Below are positions 23,041 through 64,000 of a stretch of 64,000 nucleotides of DNA, piece after piece. Position 1 is the first letter of the stretch. Every line of letters begins with the position of its first letter. Position numbers and translations under genes: made by a program. The notes under the pieces were generated by a model that saw nothing but the letters and a program-made list of their open reading frames with translations, did not search any database and had not been told where the DNA came from. The DNA comes from Bugula neritina. Its lineage: Eukaryota > Animalia > Bryozoa. The stretch lies in assembly GCA_964035545.1 (NCBI GenBank), contig OZ037772.1:8611150-8675149 (forward strand), written 5' to 3'.

Positions 23041-23129
23041 ACACACACCACACACCACACACACACCACACCACACACACACACACCACACACACACACA
23101 CCACACCACACACACACACACCACACACA

Positions 23130-23197
<68 letters not shown>

Positions 23198-23304
23198 ACA
23201 CACACACACACACACCACGCACCACACACACACACACACACCACACACACACCACACACACACACACCACACACTCACACACACACACACACAACGCACA
23301 CACG
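23041..23304. repeat. Interrupted (CA)n / CACAC microsatellite
   Basis: Seen directly; explains the spurious HT/CV ORFs. Confidence 0.95.
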
Positions 23305-37100: not shown

Positions 37101-40100
37101 CCCCCCCCACTCTGAGAACCATATCTGGTTGAAAACAAAGCTCTGAGCCGTGTTGATATATTCTACAATTATATCTATCAATTGGTATGAAGCATAAAAG
37201 TTGGAATTTTTTCTGTGATCTAGCTGTTTTCTTTGTATTAGAAAGTTTGAAAGGTTAGTGAATCAATCTCAACCAAGAAATATATATGAACATCCCTAAA
37301 ATGTGCTAAATACTGAAATTGTAAGAAAGTGTTGGGTGGATGCATTGAATGAAGGTAAATCTTTCATTTTTAGGCTCAACTTTACAGTAACTACAAAGGG
37401 GTGGATTGAAATTTGTTATAAATACAAAGGGGTGGATTGAATTGAATTATGCAATGAAGGGCATGGTGTGTATTGAAAGAACTTTTTCAGGCCCTGGATT
37501 CTGAAACTTCTATAGAATTCTTTTCAATTCCAAAAAAACTGTGGCAGAATAATAAGTTGTGAGAATAATTACCTGCGCGCTATGCATTGTGGGAATTGCT
37601 TTATTTCTGCTCACTTCCTTTAGCCACGCCTACTACTAGTGTTTGATCTAACCTATCCTTCATATTCACAAAAATTGTACTCAAAAGTCAAATTGTATTC
37701 TGCTATCCAAGAGGCAAATTCTATTTAGAAAATAAACAATAATGTGCAATTTATTAATACCTAGTCTCACGGTTTTCACAATTGTTCTCTATTTTTTCAT
37801 TCATGGTTTCCTTTCTTTCACACGGACACAAGTCATGTGACAGAAAACTATAAGATACAGTATAGTAGCAGCTTTATTGAACAACACTCTATGCCCAGTG
37901 GAGTAGCATGTAACTGCATTTACATGTAGTGTCCTTTTTAAACACTCAGATGCGAATATAAAGTTGTATCTTTTCCAGAAAGTTCTTGCTGCAGCTTCTA
38001 GCTTGTCTGATTTGCTCTAATATTGTGGTTTGATTTTTCGCCTTTTGGAGTTATTCTCTTTATATTTATATAAATTAGCTATTTCCTTATTCTATGGTAT
38101 TGTTTCATTTTCTCTGGTGTTGTTTTTCTACTATTAGGTTGGAGTTATTTCTCTTTTAATTTTGTCAGTTTTATTAGATACAGTTCCCTTTCAATTTCCT
38201 TTTTTTATAATTTTTATTTTCTCTTCAATTCTTAAGAGAAACATACTAGGCAAAACTGGCGACATTTTAGGAAGAAATATTTTTCACTAGGTCCTAAATA
38301 TGTGTAATCTATAGAATTTCCGGCTGTTTCTTAAAATTACATTGATTTATTTATTCCTTTCATTTTGAAAAATGGTGATTCATCATGACACAGTATTGCA
38401 TTACCCAATATAAATATGCATCGTCATTATAATATACTTGGAAATTTTAGCCGAACTCTTTTTGCTAATCTCGAAAAGTTGGCATCGAAATGTTCCACTC
38501 AACTTTTGATTCACTTACTGTATTGGTAACTTATGGTGTTGACTATTTTGTGTAGTTTGCGGTCTGTGTTGAGGTTGTTTTCACCTTACATATTCACTCT
38601 CTAGCGATAAGGAGTTATCTGTTCTCCTGTGTAGAGTTGTCTTCACAATGAGGTAGACTGTCTAAAAACTTTGACAACACAGTCTAGAGTAGTGAGATTA
38701 TTGGCTATAACAACGTATCCCGTGTTGGCAGCTACATGAGCAGGTCCATCAAGTTCAAGGTCATTGTAGTACGACATTTGACCTTCGGGTGTGATTTCAG
38801 TTAGCCTGTTGTTGACAGTGTCACACACTAGTAGGTTATTGCTGGGGTTCGTGCATACTCCTCCGAAATAATCTAGAAATATGATAATTTAGGGAATATA
38901 AAGAATTCTAACACAAGGAGCGGATAACTCTTACTTAATACGCTCGAAATGTATCTTCAGTCAAAAATATGTTAGATTTTTTCTTTCTATCAAATTAATT
39001 GCATATTTTATGATTACTAGTTGTGAATTGGAACGGATATTTGCGCACAAACAAGTTTGTATTGTATTCTTTTTTACATACTGTTGGCCATGTCTTCTAT
39101 CACTCTCTGGTACTTCGGGAAGGGGCGCCCTAGCTTACGTCTCCACAGAAATGTTCCATCTAGCTGAGTGCACACGATTTGTCTTCTTTTTCGATCCGAT
39201 ATGTATAACCTGTCTGGTCCACAGGCTATTGACCACATGGATTTTAGGCTATTCTCTTCTGTCTATACAAAACATCCAATTACCTATATTATATTTTTAT
39301 TAATATTTGTGATATTGCCAAACCATTTATATTTATTAGTTTTTTAATTTCAAATATTTCAGTTCTTTTACTCCAAAACTAAACCATCAAACTAGTATAA
39401 AATATTTTACTTGATATTAAAGATCATTAACCAATCATGACGCTAGTAATTGGGTCACTCTCACCTTCCTCGCTATCATGGAGTTACCATGCTCATGTAA
39501 CTTCCACACCTGCTTCTGTTTAATGTCAGTGTATATCAGTTGTTTGTCCACAGTAGCACATAACCCCCACACCTTGGGCCCCGGTTTCCTTACACTCAGG
39601 GGCACTTGGAAGTCCTCTATGGTGTAGGTGTGTATGCTGTCGTCTGTTGAGGTGTGTATTCTGCCGTCGCTGCCGGTTGCTATCTGCCGGAAACATCGCC
39701 CTACAAGAATATTGTTAATCAATTCTTTCTTGGCGCTTTATCATATTTATTTTATCACGAATACACTCTTTTAGTTAAAAAATCTCAAGCTAGTTTATAG
39801 TCACTATTCCCGTAGAGCTCCTGACGGTAAAGTTTTTTTAAACTATTTGAGGACTTGGTTTCCATTGTGACAAAGGAGCATTTTATGACTGGATGCTCTT
39901 CCTAACATCACCAATGGCCTTTACTAGAATTCAAATCCATGATTTTGTTTTTACTAAGGTAAAGCTGTAGCCCCTAGACCACCGCTGATCCCTACACTCA
40001 TTTATTTAACATGTCCTGTAAAATTTTGTAATTTAACTCTCTCCTTTTTCTTTCACAAATATACTATTTGACTTAAGAAGGCTGGAGATACTAAAACAGT

Positions 40101-43100
40101 TCCAAATAGTTTTAACTTTTAATATATTTTATTGAGCAGGGCTTCGTTCAGTGTTGATTTGTCTATTCAAAATCTGCAGGATTTGCAAAAATCTTCTACT
40201 CATAGACTCACCTTTTTGATTGACTACCAGCTTCTCAGTTTGGATGTCTAGTGTAGCCAGCCCGCCATATGTACCAGAGCCTAAGGCTAATAATACTGTG
40301 TTATCATCAGTTATAGCTATTCCATTCACGTCTTTATTCAGTAGAATATCCTTGTCAAACATCAGCTGCATGCTATTCTCCCCGACAGCTCTCGGTGATA
40401 CAGCTCTTCCGTTCATTTCTCTGTCTGTCTGTTCGTCTGGTTGTCTGTCTGTCTGTCTCTCTGTCTGTCTGCCTGTCCGTCTCTCCGCCTGCCTACTCCA
40501 CCAGTATTTGCTAAGGCAGCAATCAACTTTCACTCCCTGCTGCCTGTGCCACTGTCATTAGCGTCTGCGCTGTTATCTGTCAGCATAGTAATTATAGCTG
40601 ACTTTCTTATCTATCGCACTTCTTAGCCTCACACCCTGTTTTACCTCATACTACTGCGGGTGGGCATGTCACGCCTTCCTTACTGATTGTTGTCACGTAT
40701 TCATGTATTGATCAGTATTTAGGTATTGATTCAGAGCTGTTAGTACAGAAATTATTATATGCGGCTGACTCTATTATGTCAGCAGCTATTGTTTCATTGG
40801 TAACAATACCTGTTATACTTGTTTCATATGAATAGTATTTGCCACGCACTTGTGCCCCTTTTCATTTCCTAGCCTGTATGAAAGCAGACAACTCTCAATG
40901 TGTTTTTATATTACTTTTATATTACTTTATTCGATGTCTTACCTTGTCATTCAATTTAAAATGATGCCTAGTATACTATAACAAAGCTTCCAATCTACAA
41001 ATACTCTCACTCACTGTGTTTCCATCGCTTTTAATTCGAATAAATTTTCTGGTTGATGTTTGGAAGCAGTTGCATGGAATAAAACGACAACCATAAGTTT
41101 ATGCAAACTCCAACCACCGATTTATCCATATCAGCCTCCATTCTGCTTAATGCGATGGATACAGCAGTATATGTAATGTTATGGGAATTCTGATTGGAAT
41201 GTTGCCAAATATTGTTACTTTGCACTGGTTAACCTTGTGGTGTTTTTTATTCTAGCCTGGAGAAAGAGTTTGTGGACTTGAAGAAGAGGGAGAACGAGGA
41301 TCAGGTGGAGCTCAGGGTATGAGGAAATGTATTTTATATTCTCTGCTTTTAAAAGTTGTCTACTCTTGTATTATAACTTTATAATGAGTAAATGATAATA
41401 AGCAAAAGATTGAAGCCATCCTCCATTCTCTTATATAGTTTAAATCCCAACGCACTAACACACATGCCAAACACATAACTACTGAAAACTTCACAGAGAC
41501 TTCAAAATAAGATTTTTGAGCAGATTTCATTATCCGATTAACAGAGTCTTTTCTAGCGACTCCATTTTTCATGTTTCTATATTTGTGTATTATTGAAAAT
41601 TTGCAAATAAGTTTTAATATAATTTCGAACTGAATAATAACAATTGGAAGTAAAACACAAATATATTTAATTTTCTCTTAGTTTCTCACATACTTTAAGT
41701 TTCACTTCATGTGAGAGTGACTAAATTTAATTGTAACTTTCTTAATATCACAAAAATATTTGCCAGTCAATCTGTAGAAAATGGAATAAAGAATTTTTTG
41801 CAAATATTTAATTTCAGCTTCTCTTTTCTAGCGGCTGAGGTCAGAGAATCGACTTCTCAGGCAGCGAATTGAAAACTTAGAAAAGGAGAATGTTAGCTTA
41901 GCTGACAGGTTGATACAAGGTAGGTGTAATATATAGGTCATGTATATATAGGTCATGTATATAGGTCATAATAGATAGGTCAATATGTGGTCTAGAGGTT
42001 AGAGTGTTTGCCTAGTATTCACAAAGTCATGGGTTCGAACCCCAGTAAAGGCCATTGGTGACGTTAGGAAGAGCATCCAGTCATAATTGCTCCTGTGCGT
42101 CATATGAATACGTATTTAGCCTGATTTAACAAAAACCTCTTCTATCAGGGGTTTCTCACAGGGATAGTGACTATAAACTTGTGTGAGTTCTTTACATAGG
42201 TCATATTTATAAGTGACAATATATAAGTCATGTATAAGCTGTTTTTAAGTCAGCTTTATGTAATGATTTTTGTCTTGCTGGATATTTTTTAACCTAGCAT
42301 ACTTTTATTACACTCCTTTTATTAAAACAATAATCAACATAGGTTTCATGTTAGAATAAACTATAATGTAACAGTATAACTATATAGGTCATACAGGATG
42401 CCGTAACTGTGTCAACTCTTTTATAGGTCAAGTGACTCGCGCACAGGAAGCGGAAGTCATGTTCTCCGTCAAGAGAGAACTCTCGCAACTCAGAGAACAG
42501 AACAAAGAGCTCCACAGGAGCCTCAGTGCCAGCGAAGAACAAATCTCGGAACTAAAAGTCAAGAAACAGGTTCGTGTGACCTAAATTTCACTATTGGCTC
42601 ATTCCTAAAGATAGAAGACAACTCCCACTATCTCGTTTATTTTGTCATGTTGAGTTGATAAGTATGTAAATGGGTCATTTTACTTTATTCAGTACACACT
42701 CGAAATTTCCATTTCTCAGCTATGTTTTTAATATTTAGCTGGTAATCTATATGGGTTTTTGCTCTAAACTAATAATAATTTAAAAAGTACAAGTAATAAT
42801 CACGGTTCTTTTTAACTTTGCCTAATTTCCCATGTCTTTTCCTGATTATTTAGTTAGTTTGGATTTGCGAACCGTCACGGTTTTTCTTGACGGTTTGCAA
42901 GTCCAAATTAACTAAATAATTAGGAACAAACATGGAAAATTAAGCGAAGTTAAATAGAACCGTGGTTGTTTAATTGTATTTGTTGATGTTTCATTAGTTT
43001 TGGACAAAAATTCATATACATTAGCAGCTAAATTGTGAAAAAAATAGCTAAAACCTGGAGATTTTGAGTATGTACTAAATGAAGTAAATGACCCAAATCT

Positions 43101-46072
43101 TTCTCCAGTCTCTCTCTGGTCACCAGCCCTGGTCGCGTAGGTTCTCTGTTCCAGCCGGCACTATCTATCCTGACGAGCTCTCGCGGCCCTCTGCTTTTAA
43201 TGGCCGTGTGCGTCATCTACATTCGGTTCTCGGTGACCTTCAGACTTCAAGGTCATCCGTAACTAGTACTATAAGTGTAAGTGGTGTGGTAGAATTGTAG
43301 GTGGTGTTGCTGAACCCTACCTTTTCCTTGTTTCTTAGTTTTATTTTGTCAACTTGAATTGAATGCAACAATTACTGGTTTCTTCTATCAATCTCGTTGT
43401 GTCACTTCAGGTGTACTCGTGCTAGCAACAATGAAGTCACACACAGTGTAAAAGTGCATTTCACAATATTAGGGAGCACCAATATTTAAAATGTCTATAG
43501 TTCATACAAATCTGTAACTATTAGACGGGTTTACTTACACGTGAGTTAAAAATATAAAATGACTTGGAACTTTCTAGAATTCAGTAACTGGAGAGTTTTG
43601 TTCTGCGTTCCTGTAGTTTGATTATTAGCCTTTGTTCTTGGAAATAAGACTAAGTTCTGACTTTCTGGAGTAGTCTGGTGAAGTTGTCGTACCCGTATTT
43701 GCTTGCCATAAAGTCTTGTATGAAGTATTTCTTCTGTTTTCTGATAACTAAATTCTACCCCCTCTCTGTTCTGTTTCTACTGATCTTATGTTGTACTCTG
43801 TATATGGTGTTGTGTTTTCATCAACTCATTTCAGTTTTATTTCTAGTATTGTGGGCATGTTTACTATCATTTGAATATAATAATATAATATTTACTTTGT
43901 TTCCATGGCATTAAAACAAATGCAATATTTTGTTAGTTACATTCAATCATGATTGTGGTATTACGTCATTACCACATATGCTAATATCTCTCCGTCCAAC
44001 ATCATTTGTAATGCTCTGTTTGTACTGTGAGGTGAAACTCAAACAGTTTTAGTGGCAATTCATTTATTATTTGAATTTGCACCTTTAAATTTAGAGTAAT
44101 TTGACATGGACACATGATGATGTTGATTGTAAATGAGTGACTGCAAAGCCACTCTTCAGAATTGTGCTCCCCTGTATCTATTTCTAATGTGTTTATCTCG
44201 GAGTTGTTTCCTCCAGGAGGACATTGAATCTGATGAGAAGTTCCAGTCTCTACAAGAAGAGCTGATAGCAGTGAAGCTGAGAGAAGCCGAGTCGAATCTG
44301 GCGTTACGAGAACTGGCCAATCACGTTACAGAGTTGGACAGGGAGTGGCAGGTGAGTCATCAGCCCTTCACTTTCAGTGTCTATTTTATAAAGAAACCTA
44401 TTGAGTCACATTGACAAGGAGCAGCCGTCGTCTAGGGATTAGAGCATTTGCCTAGTATTCACAAAGTCATGGGTTCAAACCCCAGTAAAGGCCATTGGTG
44501 ATGTCAAAAGAGCATTCAATCATAATTGCTCCTGTCCACCATTTAATTAAGTCCTTAGCCCTATTTAACAAAAATTCTTTCCATCAGGGGTTTCTCACGG
44601 GGACTATAAACTTGGGTGAGTTATTAAGTCGCATTGACCTCTGCCAATCATATTCATGCGTGCAGTTGTTATTCTGCAAAGCGTATGCGAGTGTTATAGA
44701 ACTTGGAGTTGTCTTATTTTAAGCCTTAGTTTTCTCACCCCTTTAGAAACAGTTGGAGCGTACCCCCAACGATAAGCTCAGTAAACCGCAAAGTCAGGCC
44801 CTCCACGAAGAGCTCATGTCATGCAGACTGCGGGCGGCGGAGAGCAACACCGACAATAAGCAGCTTAGACTGAGAGTCATGGAACTGGAAACCAGCGGGC
44901 AGATCATAGGAAATCAGGTTCACAGGCTAATGGATGAGAACGAGAGACTAAGAGGTGACATATCCTCCGGCAAGGAGAGGGAACAGACTTTAGGCAACGA
45001 AGTCGAGGAACTGCGCAATAAAATAGCTGATATTGAGTCTAAGGTGGGCAGTCACATGCTTCAGTCACATGATCATATCACATGCTTCAGTCACATGATC
45101 ATATCACATAAATTTAAAAGTTAGTTACAATCTTTCTCTTGGGCTCTATAATTTGTTGATAATTTTATAAGCCTTGATTTTTGCACTTCCCATCAACCTC
45201 TCTTATACTTTTCCTCGACTTCATGTGTAGTCCAAGGAAGAGGTTATCAAGTATAAAATCAATGACGCGGAACAGTCGCAGCTGGTAGCGGAGTTACGGC
45301 AGAAGATCGCGGAGCTGGAGATATCTAGAGAAGAGTGCCAAGTGACCAATGAGATCATCAACACTTCACACCAACCTCTGTACCAGGATATGAAGGGATT
45401 TACTGGAGGGGTCAGTGGCTATGTTGTATATAAGATGTGTTGTGATCTAGCTTGCTTATGTAGCCTGTTTGTTTCAAAGGTTTACGACTTTGTAAGATAT
45501 GATCTCAACTACATAAATCTATTTTTTGGAAATTTTTTTGTCCAAGAAAACAGACTGTATAACTGTTTGTTTTTTAAGAAATTGCTGAGAAAAATCTTCT
45601 TGGAAAATTCAGTGCTAAAACTAGCATTTTGTGCAAAATTTTCTGTAGTTTGTGTTGGTAGTTTTTTTTAGTAGGCATCAAGAATTTGGTGTCATTTAAC
45701 CAACAGATTTAGTTCTTTTCTAATCTGTACACTTGATTTATAATTCATCAAATTTGCCGTGTTTTAATTTTATTAATTTAACTTTATATTATTGCAATCA
45801 ATATATTATTACATTAAATCACAATTACTATACTATTATATTAAATTACGATATTTTAGCTGAATTCCCGGATGTCTTTCTCCACTCTGGACGTCTTCAA
45901 AGGGACCACAGAAACTGATTCTCTATCGGATACCGAGGAGTCAGCTAAGGTCACCGACCTTGACATTGCCATATCTTCCACGACTTCTAGTAGTAAAATG
46001 GCGGCAAGCAAGCCCAAAACAAAGCAGCTCGTTTCCATGGAGATGGACGCGGATGACGATGCATTTCTGTGA
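25105..46072 (+). CDS. EVI5: EVI5/EVI5-like TBC-domain Rab GTPase-activating protein with C-terminal coiled coil
   Basis: Exons 25105-25201 (start tentative), 25601-25826, 28291-28451, 28768-28859, 29541-29651, 30336-30449, 30792-30992, 31995-32138, 32570-32659, 33055-33161, 41256-41316, 41832-41919, 42427-42569, (43109-43258 optional), 44217-44351, 44747-45043, 45231-45410, 45860-46072. TBC motifs IRRDIARTYP, YCQGSGF and YASSWFLTLF are present, as are the EVI5 coiled-coil motifs RLRSENRLLRQRIENLEKE and LQEELIAVKLREAE. Confidence 0.93.
25720..25733 (-). promoter_or_regulatory. CTCF core motif within EVI5 coding exon
   Basis: GCGCCCCCTGGTGG is the reverse complement of CCACCAGGGGGCGC, the canonical CTCF core. 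Confidence 0.4.
27327..27469 (+). CDS. EVI5: Candidate alternative first coding exon of EVI5 (N-terminal variant)
   Basis: The frame ..MRRISESIYDFVFG ends AG|GTATGA, phase 2, compatible with the acceptor at 28291 (R-DLENDSR). In-frame ATGs lie at 27327 and 27426. Confidence 0.45.
30511..30662. mobile_element. MITE family B, long near-palindromic copy
   Basis: AAGCAGCTCTGAGTTGGGGG...CTCGAGTTTGAAGTTGG / CCAACTTCAAACTCGAG...CCCCCAACTCAGAGCTGCTT. Confidence 0.75.
30966..31117. repeat. 3 x 53-bp tandem repeat spanning an EVI5 splice donor
   Basis: Unit ATGTACCAGCTGGAATATCTCATCCAG|GTGGGTGTCGGTACGCTGAGTAGTGT at 30966, 31019 and 31072. Confidence 0.9.
33993..34146. mobile_element. MITE family C (TIR GTAGTAATGGAGAAATTGAGA...TCTCAATTTCTCCACTACTAC)
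   Basis: Inverted termini; the internal AAAAGCCTGTG(C/T)TCTAGATTAGA...GAATTTCAACCCG is shared with copies at ~20915, 49105, 60991 and 61483. An inverted partial copy abuts it at ~33880-33985. Confidence 0.7.
36753..36937 (+). CDS. EVI5: Candidate alternative first coding exon of EVI5 (internal-promoter, TBC-less isoform)
   Basis: An ATG-initiated 61-codon frame ends GA|GTAAGT (consensus donor, phase 2), matching the phase-2 acceptor at 41256 (..GSDD-D-LEKEFVDLKK). Confidence 0.55.
37573..37632. promoter_or_regulatory. ZNF143/Staf site plus ETS-like and Sp/KLF-like motifs (intronic promoter-like cluster)
   Basis: The reverse strand reads TTCCCACAATGCATAGCGCGC (Staf/ZNF143 consensus). CACTTCC and GCCACGCCT follow on the plus strand. 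Confidence 0.45.
38643..40416 (-). CDS. Nested NHL-repeat-like / six-bladed beta-propeller protein (~283 aa), antisense inside EVI5 intron
   Basis: Four phase-compatible exons 40416-40212, 39700-39465, 39262-39082, 38872-38643 (852 nt including stop). Blade-like repeats: VNGIAITDDNTVLLA, FRQIATGSDGRIHTS, VWGLCATVDKQLIYTD, MWSIACGPDRLYISD, FGGVCTNPSNNLLVCDTVNNRL, PAHVAANTGYVVIAN. The start codon is uncertain. Confidence 0.8.
39778..39991 (-). mobile_element. tRNA-derived SINE family A (in intron of nested gene)
   Basis: The reverse strand contains GCGGTGGTCTAGGGG and GGCCATTGGTGATGTTAGGAAGAGCATCCAGTCATAA. Confidence 0.75.
41986..42193 (+). mobile_element. tRNA-derived SINE family A
   Basis: GTGGTCTAGAGGTTAGAG A-box, GGGTTCGAACCCC B-box and the family body. 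Confidence 0.8.
42716..43053. repeat. Long imperfect inverted repeat (fold-back element)
   Basis: CACGGTTCT...TTTGGATTTGCGAACCGTCA / TGACGGTTTGCAAGTCCAAA...AGAACCGTG, with outer arms out to CAGCTAT/ATAGCT. Confidence 0.75.
43109..43258 (+). CDS. EVI5: Candidate 150-nt symmetric cassette exon of EVI5
   Basis: TTTCTCCAG acceptor, GC-rich open frame SLSGHQPWSRRFSVPAGTIYPDELSRPSAFNGRVRHLHSVLGDLQTSRSS, GTAACT donor, phase 0-0. Confidence 0.5.
44418..44623 (+). mobile_element. tRNA-derived SINE family A
   Basis: GGAGCAGCCGTCGTCTAGGGATTAGAG...GGGTTCAAACCCC and the family body. Confidence 0.8.
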
Positions 46073-48360: not shown

Positions 48361-48571
48361 GGGAGCAGCGGTGGTCTAGGAGTTAGAGCGTTTGCTTAGT
48401 GAACACGAAATCATGGGTTCGAACCCCGACAAAGGCCATTGGTGATATTAGAAAGAGCATCCAGTCATAATTACTCCTGTGCCTCATCTGAACAAGTCCT
48501 TAGCCAATTCTAACAAAAACTCTTTCTATCGAGAGTTTCTCACAGGGATTGTGACTATAAACTTGCTTGAG
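48361..48571 (+). mobile_element. tRNA-derived SINE family A
   Basis: GGGAGCAGCGGTGGTCTAGGAGTTAGAGCG...GGGTTCGAACCCC and the family body. Confidence 0.8.
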
Positions 48572-49261: not shown

Positions 49262-51035
49262 GTATCTAGATCATATATATAGATACACAAGTTGCATGTA
49301 AGGGATTGTATTTACTGTATCACTCAGCAACATAATTATTATTGTTTATAGTTTACAAGTTATGAAGGTCAAAAGTTACAAAAACAAAGTTGTTAAACAA
49401 TAGTAACCAAATAACAGCAAGCAGCAAAAGCAGTAACATGCAGTCATAGCTGTTGGTTCAATATTGGGTTTGTTTATTCTACCAGAAAGTTCTTTAGATC
49501 AGAATGTTATTTCAGAAATTTCTTTTAGAAAATTTTTCCCTGACAGAGGAATAAGTTGACTAAACGATAACTTAAAGGCAGTAATTACATCTCTGCATGC
49601 TTTCAACTAGACATGGTATATTATGAATAGCTGCCAAACATGAATGTATGCTTCAAGATTCAAGCAAAAGTATTTAACATTGATTTCCAATTATTTCTTC
49701 AAATGGGCAGCTAAATGCAAGTAATTAAAATATGCTAACCCCTGTGATAGGGGTTGAATAACTTCTGATATGCCATGTCATGATGAATTTGCTCAATTCA
49801 TGTTTACTAAGGTATTTATGGCTTGCAAAAATGTTTATTATGTGTTATCTGTTAGCTTTGTAAATCAGTGATTGCATAATACAACATTGTTCTTTGTTAG
49901 GTAACTTTCTGCAAATAGCTTCAAGAATTTATATTGCTGTCCTAATTTCTCCTCTCTCTTTGGGTTTATCGGAACATAGTTGTCTTGAATTTTTGTTTGT
50001 TAATATTCATAATGATTTCCTGCTTATGCAATGATAGCTGTAGGAAGCTTTGGTCTCTTTTTATTGAATTATCATTGCTGTAAATTTAAAACCAGAGTTA
50101 GGCAGTACTATGGCTGTTATTATTGAACTTTGAACCCTTCTGAAAGCAAGCTCTATTCACTTGTAGTTATCTTGAAAATTGGTTTTGGTGGTGGGAGTTA
50201 TAAGCCCCGCCCCATATTCCTAAGTCAGCAAGTATTTTAAGGTACTTTGAAAAGCTTTCACAAAATTTTTGTTTAAGTTTTCTGTATAAACACACACATA
50301 CACACACGCACACACGCACACACGCACGCACATAATTATTACTTATAAATAATCAACCATGATATAATAATAATAGTGAAATATTGTATTATTGATGTCA
50401 CTATAATAGAACTTTCTATGTTATTATAGAATATAGAATAATACTCTTTCTACTATCACAATTCAAAACCCCATCTTTGCTCTCAAACGTCTATCCACTC
50501 CCTAAAATATACTTTGTTAAACAAAGTGAATCCACTCCTCTTCAGCATAAACATAATGACATCATTAAATAATGCCACCCAGGTATCACTTATAAAAATA
50601 ATAGGTGTAGAATGTAAACTTCTCCTGTGATTACATAAGCATGAACTCTTGCTACCCTCCACCCAATAAATTCTGAGGAAATATACTCCTGTCACAATTA
50701 ACCCCCAAGGCTTTTGTTTCATCCACCCTTAGCTCGATGACATCATCTCAGCACACCCTATACTAACAATAGTGTGATTTCTGTGTGATATTGAAACAAT
50801 ATACTCCTTAATTAATTGCCTCCAAGATGGAAGCTGTTTACTTAGTTGAGATATAAGATGAGGGAGATATACACTATATATACAGCATGTTGTCCATTTA
50901 ACTGTTCAGTTAGCTTATTGCTTAGCCAGCAACAATAGTGTATAATTCAGTTCTGCTGACTTCATTTGACATCAACAACACCAATTGAACAGGAGAGGTG
51001 AGTTTGGATTTATTTCACACAGTAGTAGAGAGCTT

Positions 51036-51038
<3 letters not shown>

Positions 51039-51121
<83 letters not shown>
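51039..51121. repeat. (TA)n microsatellite
   Basis: Seen directly. Confidence 0.95.
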
Positions 51122-51124
<3 letters not shown>

Positions 51125-51184
51125 AAATGAGTGTTTATAAAACGTTACTAGAGTGCTCTATAGAAATAAATCTAGAGCATAAAC

Positions 51185-51625
<441 letters not shown>

Positions 51626-52104
51626 CTGTGTTACAGACACCATCAAATTAAATATAGAGTTTATATAATAGATATACTTCATTATAGATCTACTGTTCAA
51701 AAACCATCAAATTAATTAAATACATATGCACATCAAACATATTTATACAGTTATGATTAAGCTATCAGGCTAAGTGCTGTCACCTGATCTATTGGTATAA
51801 TTTGTATCTACATATGCTGTGTATAGAATGTATAAATATAGGCATGTTATACAATTACTTAATAGTATTCAACAAAGTTTCCTGACATTTATCTAAAGCT
51901 GGGGGCATTTCACAGTACACAGATTAGCCTACTTACAAAAGCTTACATATTGTAAGACTGAAATATTGAAGATTCAAGCTGCATTTTGATTTATTTTAAT
52001 GTGTCTCACTTTAGACGAATACTCCGTTGAAAGCTTCAAAAGATTTCCATTTCTGCCTCCAAAGGTCTACTACAGTACAAATATATTAAAACTTCAATTT
52101 CAAA

Positions 52105-55100
52105 ATGCGAGTTGCCGTTTCCTTCCACCAGTTGACAAGAGCCTTTCCTGTCAGTCTGCTACAGGTGCTTGTGATTAGCTGGTTACATCAGAGCATTGAG
52201 GGGGCTGCAATACGGCCCTCGTCATATGGTATGTTTAGTTTCTGTAGTTTATATTTGTATGGCTAATATAACATTATATATAATATATGATAATATACGA
52301 TATAGAAACTTACGATACATATACGCAATAACTATGCTTCTATATAACTTTTGTGTGTGTGCTCGTGTGTGTTTGCTTTTTAATTATATCTCAAAACCAT
52401 TTGACCTTTGACCATTTGTGCTCCAATTTAGATCTCGCTGATAGTTTTTCAAAATGTTGAAAACAAGCATTTTATAAGAGTATGTTAAATAACATACTTC
52501 ATAACTCTTTACATAAAATCGTATATATATAGCATGCCCCTCGGTTATACTATAAAATGCTAAACGTGCATGCACAATTTTATGTGTGGGCTTAGTTTAT
52601 ATTCAGAGTTTGCAGAAAAATATCGTAGACTAACAGTTTCTACTATGACTTATAAATACAAGCATGGATATAGATTTGTAACACTAAACATACTTTTAGC
52701 ATCCCAATTCATCTAAAAGAGGTTTTTTATCTTTAAGTATTTGTTTATTGATAAGAAAATGGTTTCTTTTGCGGTTAACTGTTTAACTCATATAAGCAGA
52801 CAACATGTTTGTTAGCTGAATCCCAGCTAAGCTAAACTCTAGCATGAGCTAAAAAAAGCTTTTGTTGTTAAGCAGTTCCTGTTACAATACAGCTTTATTG
52901 GTGAATTCAGTAACCTGTAAAGTATTCTAGTACGACATATATCAAGTTAGGTGAAGGAAAATCTTTAAGCTTCTTGTAATTTGCTTAAATTCTAAATCAA
53001 ATATTTGACCAGTAACACAGCTAATTAATTAAACACATCCTCTGTAAGATATGTATGTGGGCAGACCTAAAAATATCCTTCAGAAATTAGTGTGGGGCTT
53101 ACAATAAATTATTAATCATATGAAGTTGAGCAAGTATTAGTTGTTTGCCAACATCAATAAGTAATTACACCTGCACATATTACATAATCTACTGCATATA
53201 TACCTTACATAATCTACTGCAAGTTTCACTTTCATCCAATTTGAGTTCTCATGTACCTGACTTGTACACCTACCATTTGTTCACCTGCACTAAAAGCTTC
53301 GAATAATTTTTTAGTAGCCAAGTGTGAATTTTCACAGAACAAAAAATTATTTATATGTCTTCTAATAGTCAAGTAACGTGGTGCCTTTTTTTGTAAAATA
53401 GAATATGTAGCTATAAACCGCATTAACTCATCAATATTCTATGTCAGTATAATGACAGTGCAGCGTTATGAGTACCCATGCAGTACACAGTTGGTTTAAG
53501 GTCATACTTTTCATTTTCTGGCTCTTTGCCAGGTGCTTTATGTTCTATATGAACAATGTTCCACTGATAGCTCGAACAGGTTGAATGTCACAGGAACAAA
53601 AAAAATATGAAAAGATAAAGAAACTTATGTTCTCCAATATACTTTTTTATTTTTTTCAAAAGCCAATTCATGTTTAAGTTATAGCTTGTTGAAAAACATA
53701 GTCCCCCTTCCACATTCTTTTCAATTTATACGCTCCTGACTTGTTATTGTGTCTCAATATGCCTTGTATTTGAGTGCTTGTTAGTCTCGCTTCACTAACT
53801 TTGCCTATACTTCACAAGTGCCAGTGCTGCTGGCTCAAAAGCTAAATGTTATAAACTGTCAGCTAAAACCCAATCTTGTATTCCTAGGTTGGTTGGCCTA
53901 AATAAAACAATAGTCAAATCATGATTTCATGTTTTAAAAATTTACTCTATTCTAACCTGCTGCCTAGCTAGTTCTATTTTTGATGTATAATTACAAAATT
54001 TGTGATACATTTTTTTGGCAACCATGTAATTTATAAAATGCAGTAATGGTACTTATAATATTATATTATTATCATTATAATATATTATATAGTATTATGT
54101 GTGTTTTTATTATCCTGCATAATATCTAATTTATTATTGTTGTTGTGCAAACAAGTGCAATTAACCTAGTTTTCAAAATGTACCTCTAAATTATCAGAAT
54201 ATCAGTTTAGATATTTTCATGCTTTGTAAGGTAAACCTAAAAAAAGAGGCTGTATTCCCAAAGTAAAGGGTGTTGAACTATGAACTATATTAGATTAGCC
54301 ACTCTGCTACCAAGTGCATCAGTATAATATTATATGAATAGCTCTGATGCTTTGTCTCCGGTGGCTGGCTGCGATATGATAACTTGGCCAACTTCCAAGA
54401 GTTTAAAATTGGCGCAATTATTCAAGAGGTTACATACTGCACAGAGCTAGCAGTGATAGTAACCTTGCTATTGGCAGTACGTATTACAACTGCCAGCATA
54501 TAAGCTGCATTGTAGAATGCCGTTGGGGCAGGCTAGTAAAACCAAATTCTGCTCTATAATATACCTTAGACAAAATGCAGCAACATAATTTTTAGTTTCA
54601 AATTACATTTGCCACCCTTACATGAGCTGTGGGCTTCATAAAGATTCATATGATTAGAGATTTATGCTATAGGCCCTATCTGTGCTAGTGTATGATGAAA
54701 ATAACACACCATTGTCAAAGTTAACTTCAAGTATGTTGTTTTCCAGAAACTCAGTAATGTCCATTTATCTCTCGCATACAAATACTTATGTAATACCATA
54801 CAGTTTAAGTTTTATTTTAGAGCACATCTGCAAACTCTACAATAAGAGCTTGCTTTACCAGTCTATTTCAGACCTGTTTTTGTAGCTAGTAATACGCAAG
54901 CTACTTATTTTTAAACTTTTGGGTTATTTGTTCAAAACCATTAGCTTTGCTAGTAACCCGAGACTATTGCAACAGTTGACTGCTATCAACATGAATTGAC
55001 AGCCTAATAATTATAACCCTTTTGAGGCGCGAAATATTTATGTAATGATAGTTACTCATATAGTGCGCGTTTTATTAACGGTGACTGCGTGGTCTAGAGG

Positions 55101-58100
55101 TTAGAGGCGTCAGCGAGGAGTTAGTTGGTTATGGTTCAACCCTGTTTTGTCGCAATTTTTTTTGTCAACTTATGCAAATCCTACGCATGTATAATAAATA
55201 TGGCTATAATTGTAAAGTTTTTTTTTAACTTTTGTTCAACAGTAAGACAACATACATGCATAATAATTAGATACTGAACACTGGACTAAACCTTAAATTG
55301 ATCTTATAGAATACAATGTACTTAAAATAATCATATGTGAATTAGAGAAACTGAAAGTACACCTGCTGCTCTATAGACAGACCTTTACTGACAAGACTGC
55401 AAAGTGAAGTGATTTAGCTGAAATTAACTCTGCCAAACAAACAAAGAATTATGTTGTGCTGAGGCATTTTCAATATATTATTGTAACATAGTGAGATGAT
55501 TCAGCTAAGTGCTAATGTAAAACAGGGAACATTATATTGGCAGAAATCCAATAGACTGCCAATTTGTGCGAGAGGGTACTATATGTTATTGTGATAGCGC
55601 AGAGCGGCAAACGTACTAGGAATGTTATAATTAGTCACAGGAGCGTAGCTAGAACCACCATATGAAGAATTTAGAAAATTGCAGTGAAACTTGCAAAATG
55701 GTGTATGTTTTTACCAAATTGTGAAGAGCATAAACAGAATTTCAAAAAACAAAGAAAGTATATTAGAGAAAACATATCAAGGAATGTCAAGTTTCACTTT
55801 TATACTTTATAAAATGAATCCCCTGTGCTACAGCAGTGGAACATGGAGGGTGTAAAATTTTACTTATTATGCAACAACTTTTTCAAAAAACTTTTTATTG
55901 AAAAATTAAAAAAGTATATGAAAGAGGAATGCAAGAGCTATCTTTTCATGTAAAATTTGTTAATGTGAGACAAAAACTGTTCGAGCTATCCCCTGGAAAC
56001 CGTTTATATATAACATAAAGCAGTGCCTGAATCTGGAAAGTAATGACCTTAAACCAACTGTGTAGCCCTGTAGTGTGATGGTTAACACACTGGCTCACTA
56101 GTTGGAGGTCTGTCTGCCTTGACCCTACCCTGACAAAAAATTAGTGAGAAAATTAAAAAACATGTGCTATTGAAATAACCAAGTTGTTGCGCCTAAATGA
56201 AAGAAAAGTTTTGAGTAGCACGGAGTTGGTGGTCACTGAGTGTATTGGTTGGGAGCCTAGAGTTTGAAGTTTGTACAATGATTTGTATATACAATAACTG
56301 GTACTCAGCAACCTCTATTTCAGTGCTGCTTCTAGTGATATTTCAAATAAGGACACAAGCATTGGTTCAGTAGCTACCAACATAATAAGATACAACGGAA
56401 CATAACAAGCGTGACTTTACAAATTAGCAGATAATTTGGTGTTAACTATATTATTATAATATTGTATAACACAGTACCTGGGAGTGTAACATAAACAGAT
56501 ACTTTGTGGTGGTATCAAATTTAATTAGTGATTATTGATCATGCACCCTCAAGCTGACTATCAAAGTATGCTGCCTGCTTCATCTGTGCACGTGACTGCA
56601 GAAATCATGTAGCATTTGCTCTTTGAGGATTTGCAATCTTTTCCAACAGATTTTCATACATGCGAGTTTATAGTCACCATCCCTTGAGAACTCTTGATAA
56701 ATCGGGCCAAGGACTAATTATATATATGCGACACGAGAACAATTATGACTAAATACCTTTCCTAACATCACCAATGGCCTTTTTCGGAGTTTAAACTCAT
56801 GACCTTCGTGCGAAGGGTTATGTTTGAAATACCTTTTTTATTTGTGGCCACCGTAGAATGCTGTAATTTTACTACCGCTACTCCTTGATGACACAATATG
56901 GTGTAGTTCTTAACTATGACTAACTTGATTTATTTTTTTCCACCTGCAGAGATTGCCAGTACAGAGAAGGTAGACAGTGACCTCTACTTAGAGCTGTTCT
57001 GTGCACTCCAACCATCTAGTTGTAAACCTATGCCTTCTGCACGTAGAGCTCAAGGGGACTTTCAGCAGAGCAACAGCAACGCCATGAATTATGGTGAGTT
57101 TAATCTAAACTTATGGCGAAATAAGCTATAGTTCTTAAAGAGCAGTAGACGTTTATTGTAACACTCATGTTGGTAATTAAAGATCAATATTTTATTCGTA
57201 TACAAGGGTCATGAGATTTAAGTTACAGCGTGAATTTCACTTAAGTTTGTAATGGACAATTTAATAAATAACCACTGTGAATTTGAATTTTTATATGTGA
57301 GTTTTTTTATAAATTGTACATAAACTGCTTATAAATATATGATTTATATAATAAAATATATTCATATTTAATATATATATTACAGAAGTATTCTAGGCAT
57401 CTGTTTTAATAGGACATCTTTTTGCTCTGTTTAGGCGGTGTAAGCCAAATGATATATAAACCATAATTTCAACTGATTTATAACATTTTATTCAAAACAA
57501 TAATATATATATTACTTAAACGTGATAGCATATGATGTTGTTTAGTAATAAGTATTTTATACTTCATTTTTGTTTTTATTGAAGTTATCTTCTCGTGGTT
57601 GGTTCAGAATAGTGAGTCACCTTTTCTCTTTTGCAGAAATGGTTTTGAAGAGTTTATTATCTAAAAGTAATTCGAAAGAAACAGGTCAAGGCTCTGCAGG
57701 AAATTATGTTGATTCTAGTCAGCTAGTAGGCTATCAACCGCAACCTGCCCGAAATATTTTGAATAGTCTAAAACGGTACGTCAGCCCGTATCTTGTTAAC
57801 AATATAACTGATTCTTTGTTCTTAACATATATTATGTAATATTTGTAAATAACTTTGGTCAGATACAGGTTTGAGTCTGAGGTTAATTCTTCAACTAAAA
57901 AGCATTTTTCTAACATAGCTTTTAGTTGTATATAAAGTAAAGGTAAGGGAGCAGTTGTGAATGTCTATAGGAGTTATAGAGTGAATTGGCTTAGTGAGTC
58001 ATGGGTTCAATCCACGGTAATGCCATTGGTGATGTTAGGAAAATACCCAGTCATAATTGCTCCTGTGTCACATCTGCATAAGTCCTTAGTCTGTTTAAAA

Positions 58101-58294
58101 AAAATCGTTTCCATCAGGGATTCTCACTTGCTTGAGTTTTTTTTATAAAGTAAATGATGTAATTCTGCAACTGTTTATTTTGTAGGTTTGGAGGTGTGGT
58201 CCATCATGGGCAAACTGGTGGAGCTTCCTTTGGCATTAAACGGCAGCTGAAAGGTTCCCAGCCTGGCACTTCCGGGTTTTTCCAAGACTGGTAA
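52105..58294 (+). CDS. Putative secreted neuropeptide/prohormone precursor, 171 aa
   Basis: Exons 52105-52228, 56950-57093, 57637-57775 and 58186-58294 join in phase (1,1,2) to 516 nt. The N-terminus is signal-peptide-like (MRVAVSFHQLTRAFPVSLLQVLVISWLHQSIEG/AA). It has a Cys pair, an RR site and two C-terminal KR-delimited peptides, with AATAAA at 58441. Confidence 0.75.
53486..56062. mobile_element. ~2.6-kb segment bounded by long diverged inverted repeats with flanking TA (candidate non-autonomous DNA transposon)
   Basis: Left TA|CACAGTTGGTTTAAGGTCAT.., right ..ATGACCTTAAACCAACTGTG|TA. Similarity extends about 180 bp inward (GATAGCTCGAACAG on both arms). Confidence 0.55.
56213..56334. mobile_element. 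MITE family B, degenerate
   Basis: AGCACGGAGTTGGTGGTCACTGAGTG ... GTGCTGCTTCTAG. Confidence 0.6.
56660..56810 (-). mobile_element. tRNA-derived SINE family A, degenerate
   Basis: The reverse strand has GGCCATTGGTGATGTTAGG...GTCATAATTG...GATGGTGACTATAAAC. Confidence 0.65.
57948..58144 (+). mobile_element. tRNA-derived SINE family A, degenerate
   Basis: GGGAGCAG head, GTCATGGGTTCAATCC, GCCATTGGTGATGTTAGG...CCAGTCATAATTGCTCCTGTG. Confidence 0.7.
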
Positions 58295-60990
58295 CCTACT
58301 ATAATATGTCTGAAGACTAATGGCTTCGCGTGCAAGGCTGCTTTCACTCACTGATCACGTGCATTAGAGTGGAAAAATTTGACCAAGCAATTGGGAGTTG
58401 TACACTCATTTTTAGTTTGTATTGCAAATGGTTATTTGCTAATAAAAAAGATCTATTATGTGTTTATGCATACAGTTATTACCAAGAAGCTTTTAAATAT
58501 TTACATTCATGCATTAAAAACAACAGAAGTCAAATAAATTGAATTCTTTAAGAAGCAACAGTCTTATTAAATAATAATGCTTTTACCTACTATTACTTAT
58601 AAAATGGATCTCATTTGTGATTATATCTACTAATATGAACCGAAAAATGCATTCCTGTTATATATGTTCAAAAAGTTGAGTTTATAGCAATATGTGACTG
58701 CATATATGTGTAGTTTTATTTTATTCATTACTTTGATATTCATTATTGATGACGATACTATTATTTTATTATCAAACTCTGCTTAATTGTACTTTATGTA
58801 CATGTTTTTAATTATAGCCATATATGTTGGAGCTACCACATGCATGTCAACGTGCAATATAGTGAAAATAATAATATGCTAAATAAATGATTAAATCATT
58901 AATTGTTTCTTCTCATCTTTTTATTCTAGAGTAAATTCTCATTATTCCAAATAATAAGATATAAGACACCAAAACATATGCATAATGAGTATAGTAAGCT
59001 AACTTTGGTGCTAATGGCATTGCATAACCACACTCATATACTTCGTGCATACAGCTTAGTACAGTAATTATCACGAAAAGCATTGCTTAACAGTTGATAG
59101 TAGATACAGTACATAGTTCAGCTAAGCATTTTAAAACGGAGTTGTCTTTTACCAATAAATAGAAGTGAAATAAGTCGTAAATTATATGCAGAAGAAATCA
59201 TTACAATAAGTATATGTACACAAAAGCCTGCGGACTAATACAGACTGAGTACCAGTATAGAAAAATAGTACTGAGTTTCGATACCTCGTTACTAGACTCG
59301 CAAAATATATGCAACTAAACTATTAGCCTTCGCTGTGTTTCTATAAACAACATGGCAGGAAAAGTGGGCAATTAAAATTGTTACTAATGGCGAATTTAGA
59401 GCCAAATTAAACTGAAAATAACTGCTATAAGTATTTAAAGTGTCAACCAAACATTTGAAATATTTATAAATATGATTTAAAGTAAGTCAAACAGATAAAA
59501 ACACCACAAACATTCTAGTTACTAGGCATCCGCATGTCAATTTGAAATCGAATCATCATAATCATTATCATTATGATTACGATAAATTATGACTATCATT
59601 ATGATTATGATATTTTTATATTATAATTTATAATATAAAAATAATTATTAGTTTTTTTGTAAATACACATCAGACTAGTCATATATCTAAACTCCTACAC
59701 TGTAGCTTAAACTGTCGCTAGTTTTAATTTAAGCAAGTTATTGACTTGTCTCTATAACTATAAGTATAAGTATATTGGACTTGGTGTATAAGTATTGCAA
59801 GTACAGTTGACACAAAGTCAAACGTACCAAGATTTTAATTTGAATGAACAGAAGTTGATAATAATTAGTCAATTTTAGCAATAAATTAATTGTTTTGATA
59901 ATTGAAAAGGTTATCAATCACTAGATTGTAGGACATTTTCGAATAATTGTTAATTGAATAAAATAATAAGATTAAGATAGGATTTTACTTTTAGTAAGCA
60001 TTTTATTTAGATATGCGATTTGCACGCATTGTGACCAATAATGTTTTGTGAATATTTTTATACTGTCATTTTATTAAATTTGATAACATGCATCAATAAT
60101 TACTAGTTCAAAATATTATATTATTCTTAAAGTTTCTTAAAACATTTTGTAATTTATTAGAAATAAATTTAATCAATAATTTATTTTCCTGTGACAATAA
60201 TTTACTAATTTTAAATGTACAATAACATTATGAAAAAGTGTTATACATTTCCTCTATTTATTAAAATATTTTGTAATACAGTTTATGTATGCATATGGTA
60301 GTGTTACAAGAAGTTAGCCATGTTGATAGATAGGCAATTTACATAGTATTAGGATAAGTTGTGTGAAAGATTTATCTCAAGAAAGACATAGTGTGGTATA
60401 AAGTGGCATGTAGTTTGCTATCTTGTATTAGTTTACGTAGGAAGACAAAGAAAATACCTGTGTAAACAAACGTTTCATTGCCAAACCTGATATCTTGTCT
60501 TAATTTGGTCTCGGTAACTAGACATCAATCAATTTATTTTATAGTTTTATCAATATTGCTAATGAACTTGTGAAGAACAGACGTGTTTTATATAATGCAT
60601 TCTGAGCTTCTACTAGAAACTAGAATATTGATTATTTTGAATAGCTAACAAGTTGTTACTTACAGAGGGTGAAAAGTGTTGTGCCAAAATAAATTTTTGT
60701 TTTACTGATTTTCCAGTCTCATAGTGAGTCATAAATTAATCGACTGTAGAGTGATGATAATAAATTTAGCTATCTCAGTCAATGAGGGCTAAATAAAACT
60801 CATTCAATTGGTCAATTGGATAATGAATTTACAAAAAAGCATACATTGATTGACTCTTCAATCAGCAATTTAGTAGTCGACTGTTAGTTACACTGAATAG
60901 TTGATAATTAGAAACAAATAACTCGATTGCGTATGACTCAATTACACTTTAATTGATTTAGCAATAACATTGACTGCATATGGGAGGTAG

Positions 60991-61146
60991 GTACAGTAAT
61001 GGAGAACTTTAAAAACGCCTGTGTTCTAGATTAAAAATGTAGCATAAGAAGTTGTGTTCTCGCGAGAACTTTAACTCGCACCCAAAACTAAAATTTAGTA
61101 ATAAAATTAAAGAACTTACGCTATCTCAATTTTCCACTACTGCTGC
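60991..61146. mobile_element. MITE family C
   Basis: CAGTAATGGAGAA...GCCTGTGTTCTAGATT...TCTCAATTTTCCACTACTG. Confidence 0.65.
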
Positions 61147-61225
61147 TAAGTGGCATATATTCAAAACTACATAAATTTTTAGAAATACTTACTCACCACT
61201 TTATCTACTGCACAGATCTTTAGTC

Positions 61226-64000
61226 ATGGGGATCACACACTGGCATGATAAAGATTATTTTGGATCACTGGTCTGCGGAGAAGAGCAAGCATTTTCTGCC
61301 CTGGAGTTTTTGATTGACGATCTTCACGTGAGTAAGGAGCTGACGGTTCACAGATTCCTGGGAGATGCCGGCTCAGAGGACTTTATCTGGTCTCTAGTCA
61401 AATTCCTGGGGAGTCGAGACTCAAGGTCAGGTTCTGTAAAACTTTTTGTGATTTTCAATATATTTTAGTTTGGTCAAGGTATGTACAGTAACGGAGAAAT
61501 TGAGAAAAGCCTGTGTTCTAGATTAGAAATGTAGCACAAGAACTTATGTTCTTGTGAAAATTTCTACCTGTGTCCCAAAGCAAAATTTAATAATAAAATT
61601 AAATAACTTGGGCTATGTAAATTTCTCTGCTATTGCTCCTAAATGGTTTGATTAGTGTAAGTGAGTTAAAGTGCAGGTCAGTGAAAGAGTAATTTCTTAT
61701 GTATTATTTTTCTAATTTATCTCCACCACAAAGTGTTTGCCTTACGCTATGTTGAGCTAGTGAGGAACAAAAAGTGGATGTAAGTTAGTTATGGTGTAAG
61801 TTAGTGTAAATGAAAGTATAAGTAAGAATAGTTAATAATGTAAACTTATAGTAATCAGTTCTAATTCCTCATAAGCTAAATTAGCAAACACACGTCCACA
61901 TCAACTTGATGTTACGTTCAAAGTGTTGCAGTAACTGAAATTTGTTGTTCAGTGTGACAGCAGCTTAGCCTGCTAGGTAGTCTAGCCACTATTGTTGAAC
62001 TGTAAATAAACACTTTTATGTTACTGTTATGCTTTACTATACATTACAATACCTTATTAACACATTTTCTACTTGCTTAAGTTTTCTACTTCATTTAATT
62101 TAATACTCTAAGTGAAAGCTTTCTTGCTGCTTTACTGTATTAAGTATTGATGTCTCATAGTCATTACATTTGTGGCAGTGTTTGCATGCAGTTGGTCTAT
62201 AATGAAAAAATTGTTCCCATTTAAAAGAAATAAGTTTTCATAGAAAATTATGAACGTTAGTTATTACAAATTTCTTGCTTTAAGATTATGATGTACCTAA
62301 AAATATTTACAAACTAAATCTTGAGATTTTGGCGATATTTTATTTTAAATTGTTATATCATTGTTGCTTTACACTCTTACATATCATACTTAGGTCAGTT
62401 GCAATTAAATACATGGAATTATTAGTCCATAACCATTTTAGACTGTTTTATATGATGACTTCATTTCTGTACTGTTTCAAATATATGAATTTTAGTAAAT
62501 ATAAAAACAAGTTTCAGAATTCTTTTCCAAAAGTCAAGGCTGAGACCAGCAGATAAAATTATTTGAGGTCTTATTCTCTAACAGGAAAAACAACTTGTAA
62601 AACAAGTTGAGTTTTACAAGCTATATTTCTCAATTTATATTTCAAGCGCACCTTGCTATTAGCTCAAAACTCTGAATAACTGAAAAAATTCAAGATATTC
62701 TGAATTTTCTTATTCAATACAGATCGTAGCCAAAGTTTTAAGAGTTATCATCTCCCAGAGAGACATGATATTTATATATTATAGCCTCTTTGTCACACTG
62801 TAGAGTTGCTGGAAATGCTGCGTATATTATTGGAACTATTGCTGAATCTGCAGCTGGTAGAGACAGAGTTATCTCCCTCACCGAGAGCCGCCATATTGAA
62901 AAGAAGAACATCTTGCCTGACCTCGTCAGCCTACTCAGCTCCAGTGATGACGAGAGCGTTATGAACGCTGCCGGTACTATTGGGACGTTAGCCGAATCAG
63001 ATGAAGTGAGAACATGTCTTTAACTGTACAAGTTGATGATTTAATTGTATAACAAGTAAAACTGGATAAACAAGATTCTTATAACCATATTAGGAAGTTT
63101 TCTTAGGTTAAAACTAAAGCTGCATGTATACAGGCCGATTTTTCATTAAAATCGGCCGATAAACTGTCTGACGATTTTATAAACAACTTAATGATTCAAT
63201 TGTAATAAGTATAAGGAAAATTCTTTCAACACCTTATTAGGCGGTTTTCTTAGGAACTAAGTAATATTGTTATTGCTAGGTTTTTTTGAGAAAGCAGAGA
63301 GGGAGATGACTACCATTCTTTTATTAGTTGGGAAATTATTTTTTCTAACCTGATACAATTTTATGACAATAATATATGCTTATGATGCTTTTATTTATGT
63401 TTAGTACAAGTAATTTTTTTTTGCAAAAACTGTTTCAATGTTGCGATATATTTTACTTTTTAAAGATGATAATATTTAGACTATTTGAGACTTTGTACCA
63501 GCGCTGTTACTATACAGCTAAAACAGTAGTAGCAGCAGTATTAGTGGTTTTAGCAATAACAAGAGCAGTTAAAATAGTAGTAGTAAAAGTAGCAGTCCCA
63601 ATAGCTTACTTTCTACTCATTTCCAGGGAAGAGACTGGTTACTGCAGGAGTCTTGCACTCAAAAACTGATAGAAAAAGTCACATCTTTGTTATCCAATGA
63701 GAATGATTTGACAGCCAGTAATGCGGCCTTAGTTCTTGCACGTCTCACTATATCGGAGAGGGGCTGCAAGCTGCTACTCAACAATCACTACAGTAAAACT
63801 ATTCTCTCACAGCTAATTGGCTCCCTGGGCTCTGATGAAGCTGGTTAGTGTATAAAACTATCAAAAACCTTTCAATTTGTTGGTCTTTTCTTTTTTAATT
63901 TGTAATTTGTAGTCTGAGAATTTCTATGAATTGCAGGTAAAGGGATGAATGCAGCTTTTGCTATTGGTAGACTGTGTGACATTCCTGAAGGCCGCGCTAT
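61226..64000 (+). CDS. Armadillo/ARM-repeat protein, 5' portion (continues beyond window)
   Basis: Exons 61226-61425, 62804-63005, 63627-63843 and 63937-64000+ join in phase. ARM-like repeats: VAGNAAYIIGTIAE, LPDLVSLLSSSDDESVMNAAGTIGTLAE, TASNAALVLARLT, GMNAAFAIGRLC. Confidence 0.85.
61483..61636. mobile_element. MITE family C
   Basis: CAGTAACGGAGAAATTGAGAAAAGCCTGTGTTCTAGATTAGAAATGTAGC... Confidence 0.65.

Follow-up and report, generated by a model that had tools for sequence, protein, structure and literature searches.

A single-copy gene of Bugula-type bryozoans that may encode an orphan, convertase-processed neuropeptide precursor

The one dedicated survey of bryozoan neuropeptide and hormone precursors that we found described 11 of them in Bugula neritina, all by homology to known families, namely six insulin-like peptides, BnFDSIG-like, BnPep-like, a vasopressin-type precursor, NPF and GPB5 (Wong et al. 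2016, PMC4990251). For the sequenced genome of this species, 214 Mb in size, genes were predicted by AUGUSTUS with the help of transcriptome hints (PMC7576161). Here we analyse 64,000 nucleotides of forward-strand DNA deposited as B. neritina (assembly GCA_964035545.1, contig OZ037772.1, positions 8,611,150 to 8,675,149; hereafter the window, numbered from its first letter), in which we find, at 52105-58294, a single-copy protein-coding gene that is almost certainly real, that has so far been seen only in Bugula-type bryozoans and whose product may be a precursor from which prohormone convertases would release short peptides. Comparisons throughout are with one relative at a synonymous divergence (dS) of about 0.3, the sequenced B. 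neritina (assembly GCA_010799875.2; contig VXIV02001245.1, L008), and it is this relative that is meant by B. neritina below.

The gene lies on the plus strand and consists of four exons whose junctions have phases 1, 1 and 2, so that all four join in frame to a 516-nucleotide open reading frame (ORF) of 171 codons followed by TAA. The acceptors of exons 2, 3 and 4 read cag, cag and tag, and the donors of exons 1, 2 and 3 read GTATGT, GTGAGT and GTACGT. A preliminary description of this DNA had given the same exon coordinates, GT/AG borders, matching phases and 171-residue product, and had placed the two C-terminal peptides, a 17-mer and a 16-mer, correctly. The features are as follows.

52105-52228, plus strand: proposed exon 1, a candidate, with an ATG, a signal-peptide-like N-terminus and the donor ATG/GTATGT, phase 1
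56950-57093, plus strand: exon 2, encoding the conserved N-terminal region, in which a C-x6-C pair and an RR site lie
57000-57002 and 57021-57023, plus strand: Cys codons of the C-x6-C pair in exon 2, ring residues ALQPSS
57042-57047, plus strand: RR site of exon 2, after the Cys loop
57637-57775, plus strand: exon 3, with a central spacer of about 22 residues that evolves fast between conserved ends; its last residues are the first conserved KR
58186-58294, plus strand: exon 4, with the 17-mer, KR, the 16-mer and the TAA stop
58187-58237, plus strand: 17-mer FGGVVHHGQTGGASFGI of exon 4, FGGVVHHGQ[T/S]GGASFGI across both sequences
58238-58243, plus strand: second C-terminal KR, between the 17-mer and the 16-mer
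58244-58291, plus strand: 16-mer QLKGSQPGTSGFFQDW, QLKGSQPG[T/N]SGFFQDW across both sequences, with TAA directly after it
58295-58470, plus strand: likely 3' untranslated region, with a conserved AATAAA at 58441-58446

Evidence for the coding nature of exons 2 to 4 comes from an orthologue. The ORF around exon 3, used as query in a word-indexed protein search, led to one small cluster of metagenome and Logan ORFs. The contigs of these ORFs (L004-L007) align with 56064-59742 of the window at roughly 79-84% overall, and L008 is 96-99.9% identical to them. As far as sequence can tell, the window DNA is thus from a bryozoan related to, yet clearly diverged from, the sequenced B. neritina. An insect origin was entertained as well and set aside, as no 7tm_6 odorant-receptor match turned up. 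When the exon-2 peptide was compared, in a profile-free search, with 1.84 billion representative proteins, a single cluster was matched, again that of B. neritina, with no wider homologue beyond it, and the 90% cluster of this match includes KAF6033758.1 (A0A7J7K807_BUGNE; hypothetical protein EB796_007940, B. neritina, 134 amino acids). This AUGUSTUS model joins exons 2, 3 and 4 at identical junctions and shares with the window product about 88% amino-acid identity over 130 residues (16 differences), the same stop and the same two KR pairs, but differs in beginning with a four-residue mini-exon (MTKY) and in having no signal peptide; it is uncharacterised and not labelled as a peptide precursor. 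The gene had earlier been called hidden, which holds in part only, since exons 2-4 were already modelled there. The locus occurs once in the 216-Mb genome, and a search of the window's own genome gave no paralogue of exon 2, 3 or 4 at E<=10.

The coding regions and introns compare with those of B. neritina as follows, dN/dS being the ratio of non-synonymous to synonymous divergence.

Exon 2: 92.4% nucleotide identity, 0 gaps, 8 synonymous and 3 non-synonymous changes, dN/dS 0.074
Exon 3: 87.1% nucleotide identity, 0 gaps, 4.5 synonymous and 13.5 non-synonymous changes, dN/dS 0.85
Exon 4: 91.7% nucleotide identity, 0 gaps, 7 synonymous and 2 non-synonymous changes (T>S, T>N), dN/dS 0.074
Introns 2 and 3: 88% and 82% nucleotide identity, 21 indel events in 953 nucleotides

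The 392 exonic nucleotides contain no indel, which at the intron rate would occur by chance with a probability of about 2e-4, and the synonymous excess in exons 2 and 4 together is significant (binomial P=5e-7), while in the other two reading frames of the exons dN/dS exceeds 1 and 9-11 stops occur. B. neritina retains the reading frame with its stop codon, the acceptors of exons 2, 3 and 4 and the donors of exons 2 and 3, together with the polypyrimidine tract of the exon 2 acceptor and an ACTAAC branch-point-like motif. The guanine-cytosine (GC) content also peaks locally at exons 2-4 (0.39-0.49, against 0.19-0.30 in introns 2 and 3). Exons 2-4 are, on this comparative evidence, coding, correctly joined and under purifying selection. 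Conservation does not end with the stop codon: a gap-free block runs from 58142 to about 58590, i.e. some 300 nucleotides beyond the stop, with 97% identity at 58412-58471. Within this stretch the AATAAA at 58441-58446 is kept in B. neritina and the next one (58533) is not, which suggests a 3' untranslated region of about 170 nucleotides.

Among the described systems, pedal peptides and orcokinins, represented in B. neritina itself by BnFDSIG-like and BnPep-like (PMC4990251), had been proposed as a loose match for the 17-mer, and part of this resemblance stands. The 17-mer is of about the right length, its F-G-G start resembles the variant SFGGIGGRPASY of BnFDSIG-like (PMC4990251) and its GASFGI end is also found in a Daphnia pulex orcokinin precursor, the only string to be matched in the supplements of PMC4990251, PMC8557429 and PMC6425005. 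However, there is one copy of the 17-mer here rather than tandem copies, with no internal repeat visible in the 171-residue product, and the peptide starts FGGVVHHG, contains no acidic residue and lacks (F/L)D(S/E/R)(I/L)G and IGxG (Table 2, PMC4990251). When the window's own genome was searched in six frames with the exon-4 peptide, the locus itself was the only match at E<=10, with no pedal-peptide/orcokinin gene beside it. Membership in this family was therefore rejected, since tandem copies, the core motif and similarity to the pedal-peptide/orcokinin genes of the same genome are all missing.

The product can also be compared with convertase-processed precursors in general, which it resembles in its small size, in the lack of a predicted fold and in having conserved short peptides beside KR near the C-terminus. 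The language-model neighbours of the 134-residue orthologue are likewise mostly neuropeptide precursors (DH31, PDH, CCK, NPFF, PBAN, tachykinin-3 and galanin, feature similarity 0.86-0.90), although they point to no single family and, by the tool's own calibration, serve as a lead and not as evidence. Folding gave no confident structure, with a predicted local distance difference test score (pLDDT) of 0.39 in the ESM Atlas and of 36.6 for an AlphaFold2 model, the latter built from a single sequence, so that its low confidence is weak support for disorder. Unlike such precursors, the product has no Gly for amidation, and the orthologue matches no Pfam family at E<=10 (nor do single exons at E<=1), which for the calcitonin/DH31 type covers the DH2-like family (PF27927) and every peptide-hormone family. 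A ring peptide of the allatostatin-C/somatostatin or CCHamide type was considered and rejected, as the C-x6-C pair is placed in the N-terminal third of the product and no dibasic site precedes it, whereas such rings sit at the C-terminal end of their precursors, directly behind a dibasic site. Its ring residues ALQPSS are also unlike what we take to be the consensus of those families. Exon 4 alone had no usable match in the ESM Atlas, literature string searches with the peptides found no paper, and a metagenome scan with an exon-4 alignment was blank, which means little in that the same scan missed a known JGI contig.

Judging from sequence features, processing of a neuropeptide precursor by convertases is the single most likely mechanism for this gene, though we would put it at somewhat less than an even chance, with the signal-peptide exon a candidate. 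Transcription would start some 4.7 kb ahead of exon 2, a distance of about 2.1 kb until a repeat was inserted into intron 1, and exon 1 would provide a cleavable signal peptide. The remaining, non-globular pro-protein of about 138 residues would then enter the regulated secretory pathway, where prohormone convertases would cleave behind each of the two conserved KR pairs, leaving a carboxypeptidase to strip the basic residues. The products would be the 17-mer and the C-terminal 16-mer, the latter possibly with an N-terminal pyroglutamate and neither of them amidated, and the N-terminal part, which carries the C-x6-C loop and is just as conserved, might be a third product or a sorting or chaperone domain. 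In its fullest form, which we regard as a tentative and rather doubtful extension, the gene would encode a bryozoan-restricted precursor of a non-amidated 17-mer, a pyroglutamate 16-mer and perhaps a disulfide-looped N-terminal peptide, acting on as yet unpaired receptors and possibly descended from a pedal-peptide/orcokinin ancestor.

In support of convertase processing, B. neritina keeps both C-terminal KR sites, and its versions of the 17-mer and 16-mer differ by one conservative change each (T/S and T/N), while the central spacer of about 22 residues is near-neutral in its evolution. Several observations weigh against it. The RR after the Cys loop, previously set off as a dibasic site, is SR in B. 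neritina, which in turn has an extra KR in the exon 3 spacer where the window has QP. Three dibasic pairs in 138 residues with 14 Lys and Arg are not above what shuffling yields (P=0.13). Conservation is not limited to the KR-bounded peptides, a pattern that had been named as one that would support the precursor: at this short distance the 47 N-terminal residues encoded by exon 2 are just as constrained (dN/dS 0.07). The peptides would be non-amidated, as originally stated, with no amidation Gly and no repeated peptide copies in the product. A search for RNA runs covering the locus found no RNA run and only one DNA-like run, which shows haplotypes and repeats across the locus and no splice joints; no transcript-derived protein was present among the protein collections searched, and the gene is not one of the 11 precursors of the homology-based B. 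neritina survey (PMC4990251). The signal-peptide exon, too, is an unverified candidate: its orthologue was not recovered, and the 10 kb upstream of exon 2 contain some five further hydrophobic ORF pieces that begin with ATG and have a phase-1 GT, two of them with usable donors and one of these two inside a repeat. A piece like exon 1 is thus expected by chance and is statistically not special.

Exon 1 as proposed, to which we incline with modest confidence, has A at -3 of its ATG, a basic n-region, a 15-residue hydrophobic core including LLQVLVISWL and an IEG/A-type cleavage site, and it has single-copy depth in the DNA run. Neither protein searches with the exon-1 ORF or an overlapping alternative-frame ORF nor a metagenome scan with exon 1 found relatives of it. 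In the same DNA run a second haplotype is seen at about half depth at 52069-52213 and in many places in 52.8-56.4 kb, with differences of about 3% (5 in some 145 nucleotides around exon 1), which fits the high heterozygosity reported for B. neritina. This haplotype leaves the exon 1 ORF open, with V5I, one synonymous change and W26C, variants that say little for or against the exon. The GenBank model starts instead at a mini-exon present in the window as well:

56888-56900, plus strand: alternative start mini-exon of the GenBank model, 13 nucleotides, MTQY (MTKY in B. neritina), followed by an intron of 47-49 nucleotides (49 in the window)

The most serious of the competing explanations builds on this start. 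The product would be a small, non-secreted protein beginning at the mini-exon, or at some other exon upstream that encodes no signal peptide, and its KR pairs would be ordinary residues, a possibility that we consider unlikely but worth keeping in view. It is favoured by KAF6033758.1 having been modelled with this very start, by the ATG and GT of the mini-exon being present in both sequences, by exon 1 not being confirmed and by the dibasic pairs not being enriched. However, L008 begins at window-equivalent 52666, about 440 nucleotides downstream of exon 1 and 1.7 kb upstream of the gene as modelled (EB796_007940 at L008:1681-3092, with a 47-nucleotide intron), so that AUGUSTUS could not see exon 1. 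EB796_007940 is thus probably a truncated model resulting from assembly fragmentation, with the mini-exon forced on the program by the contig end. The mini-exon also has a weak donor that differs at +5/+6 between the two sequences (GTGTAG and GTGTTA), T at -3 of its ATG and a conservation equal to the intron background, and it is surpassed by exon 1 in both donor (GTATGT) and ATG context; besides, the conserved lone Cys pair and the precursor-like language-model neighbours fit secretion better. As the start of the gene we hold the mini-exon to be quite improbable, what is left beside it and exon 1 going to some other upstream exon. We rejected an unspliced extension that starts at the ATG at 56916, since indels of 1-2 nucleotides break its frame in B. 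neritina.

If the product is secreted, it might also act whole, or serve no signalling role at all, as a matrix, adhesive or defence factor that no convertase cleaves. We think this, too, improbable, if still a fair competitor. All of the protein but the spacer of about 22 residues is conserved, and not just the KR-bounded peptides; there is neither amidation nor a repeated copy, and this orphan is linked to no receptor or family, all of which would suit a protein acting whole. On the other hand, no fold is predicted for it, the two KR exactly border two nearly invariant short C-terminal segments and the language-model neighbours are peptide-hormone precursors, which speak for the convertase-processed precursor. 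That there is no gene at all is very improbable and close to refuted: no transcript evidence was found and AT-rich DNA supplies many GT/AG pairs, so that chance ORF pieces might be joined by chance, or the exons be extra 3' exons of the upstream gene EVI5, but a dN/dS of 0.07, zero exon indels and conserved stop and splice sites argue against chance, and EVI5 exons are unlikely given that EVI5 seems to own a terminal coding segment with a stop 6 kb upstream and that the gene is modelled separately in B. neritina.

Intron 1 is long mainly because of a block of very high-copy repeat, without which it would measure about 2.1 kb.

53475-56100, no strand assigned: very high-copy repeat block in intron 1, about 2.6 kb, with a word depth of 5e4-1.4e5 against a baseline of about 100

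In B. neritina the block is replaced by about 23 nucleotides (L008 870/894 corresponding to window 53474/56101), which points to a recent insertion of one transposable element or of several nested ones. The window also shares with B. neritina (L008:1420-1592) a short interspersed repeat, about 160-175 nucleotides in length, that is scattered over both strands of the window. Its loose-end consensus includes GGGATTCGAACC and is tRNA-like in look, and ARAGORN calls no tRNA in it.

56650-56850: copy of the short interspersed repeat in intron 1
57997-58126, minus strand: copy of the short interspersed repeat in intron 3
About 523-592, 6009-6166, 7493-7596, 39786-39959, 42020-42181, 44460-44614 and 48395-48569: other copies of the short interspersed repeat

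Elsewhere in the window, long (CA)n/(TG)n and (TA)n microsatellites at 22995-23378 and 50985-51700 give rise to long spurious ORFs in several frames.

The gene is located between EVI5 and a gene for an ARM/HEAT-repeat protein, both on the plus strand.

EVI5, plus strand: TBC exon at about 30.8 kb and coiled-coil exons up to 45.1 kb
ARM/HEAT-repeat gene, plus strand: from about 61 kb, syntenic in B. neritina

Downstream of the EVI5 coiled-coil exons, a stop-free segment rich in Ser, Thr and Asp at 45860-46069 (plus strand, GC content 0.49) is closed by a stop near 46070, which is 6 kb before the gene described here, and is likely the terminal coding exon of EVI5. On the other side, window 60099-64000 (plus strand) corresponds to L008:4625-8455, the region of the ARM/HEAT-repeat gene, at 79-88% nucleotide identity, and the GenBank model of that gene, with 80 amino acids at L008:5695-7273, looks too short for the span that is conserved. 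On the minus strand, at 11472-15271, lie exons of a NEK6/7-like protein kinase (Pkinase, E=1.7e-15, ORF 13624-13938).

What was already known of this gene is a truncated hypothetical-protein model in B. neritina, and what we propose as new, its orphan, peptide-precursor-like identity, is plausible but unproven. At present it is one orphan candidate, of a kind that often comes out of genome scans, and the locus shows how a contig end can yield a truncated GenBank model that masks a possible signal peptide. If the precursor reading is true, the gene would represent a lineage-specific peptide signalling system in a phylum with an almost unknown peptidome and, being conserved and an orphan among precursors, would provide a candidate specific to this lineage to be considered in larval settlement and metamorphosis of a major fouling animal.

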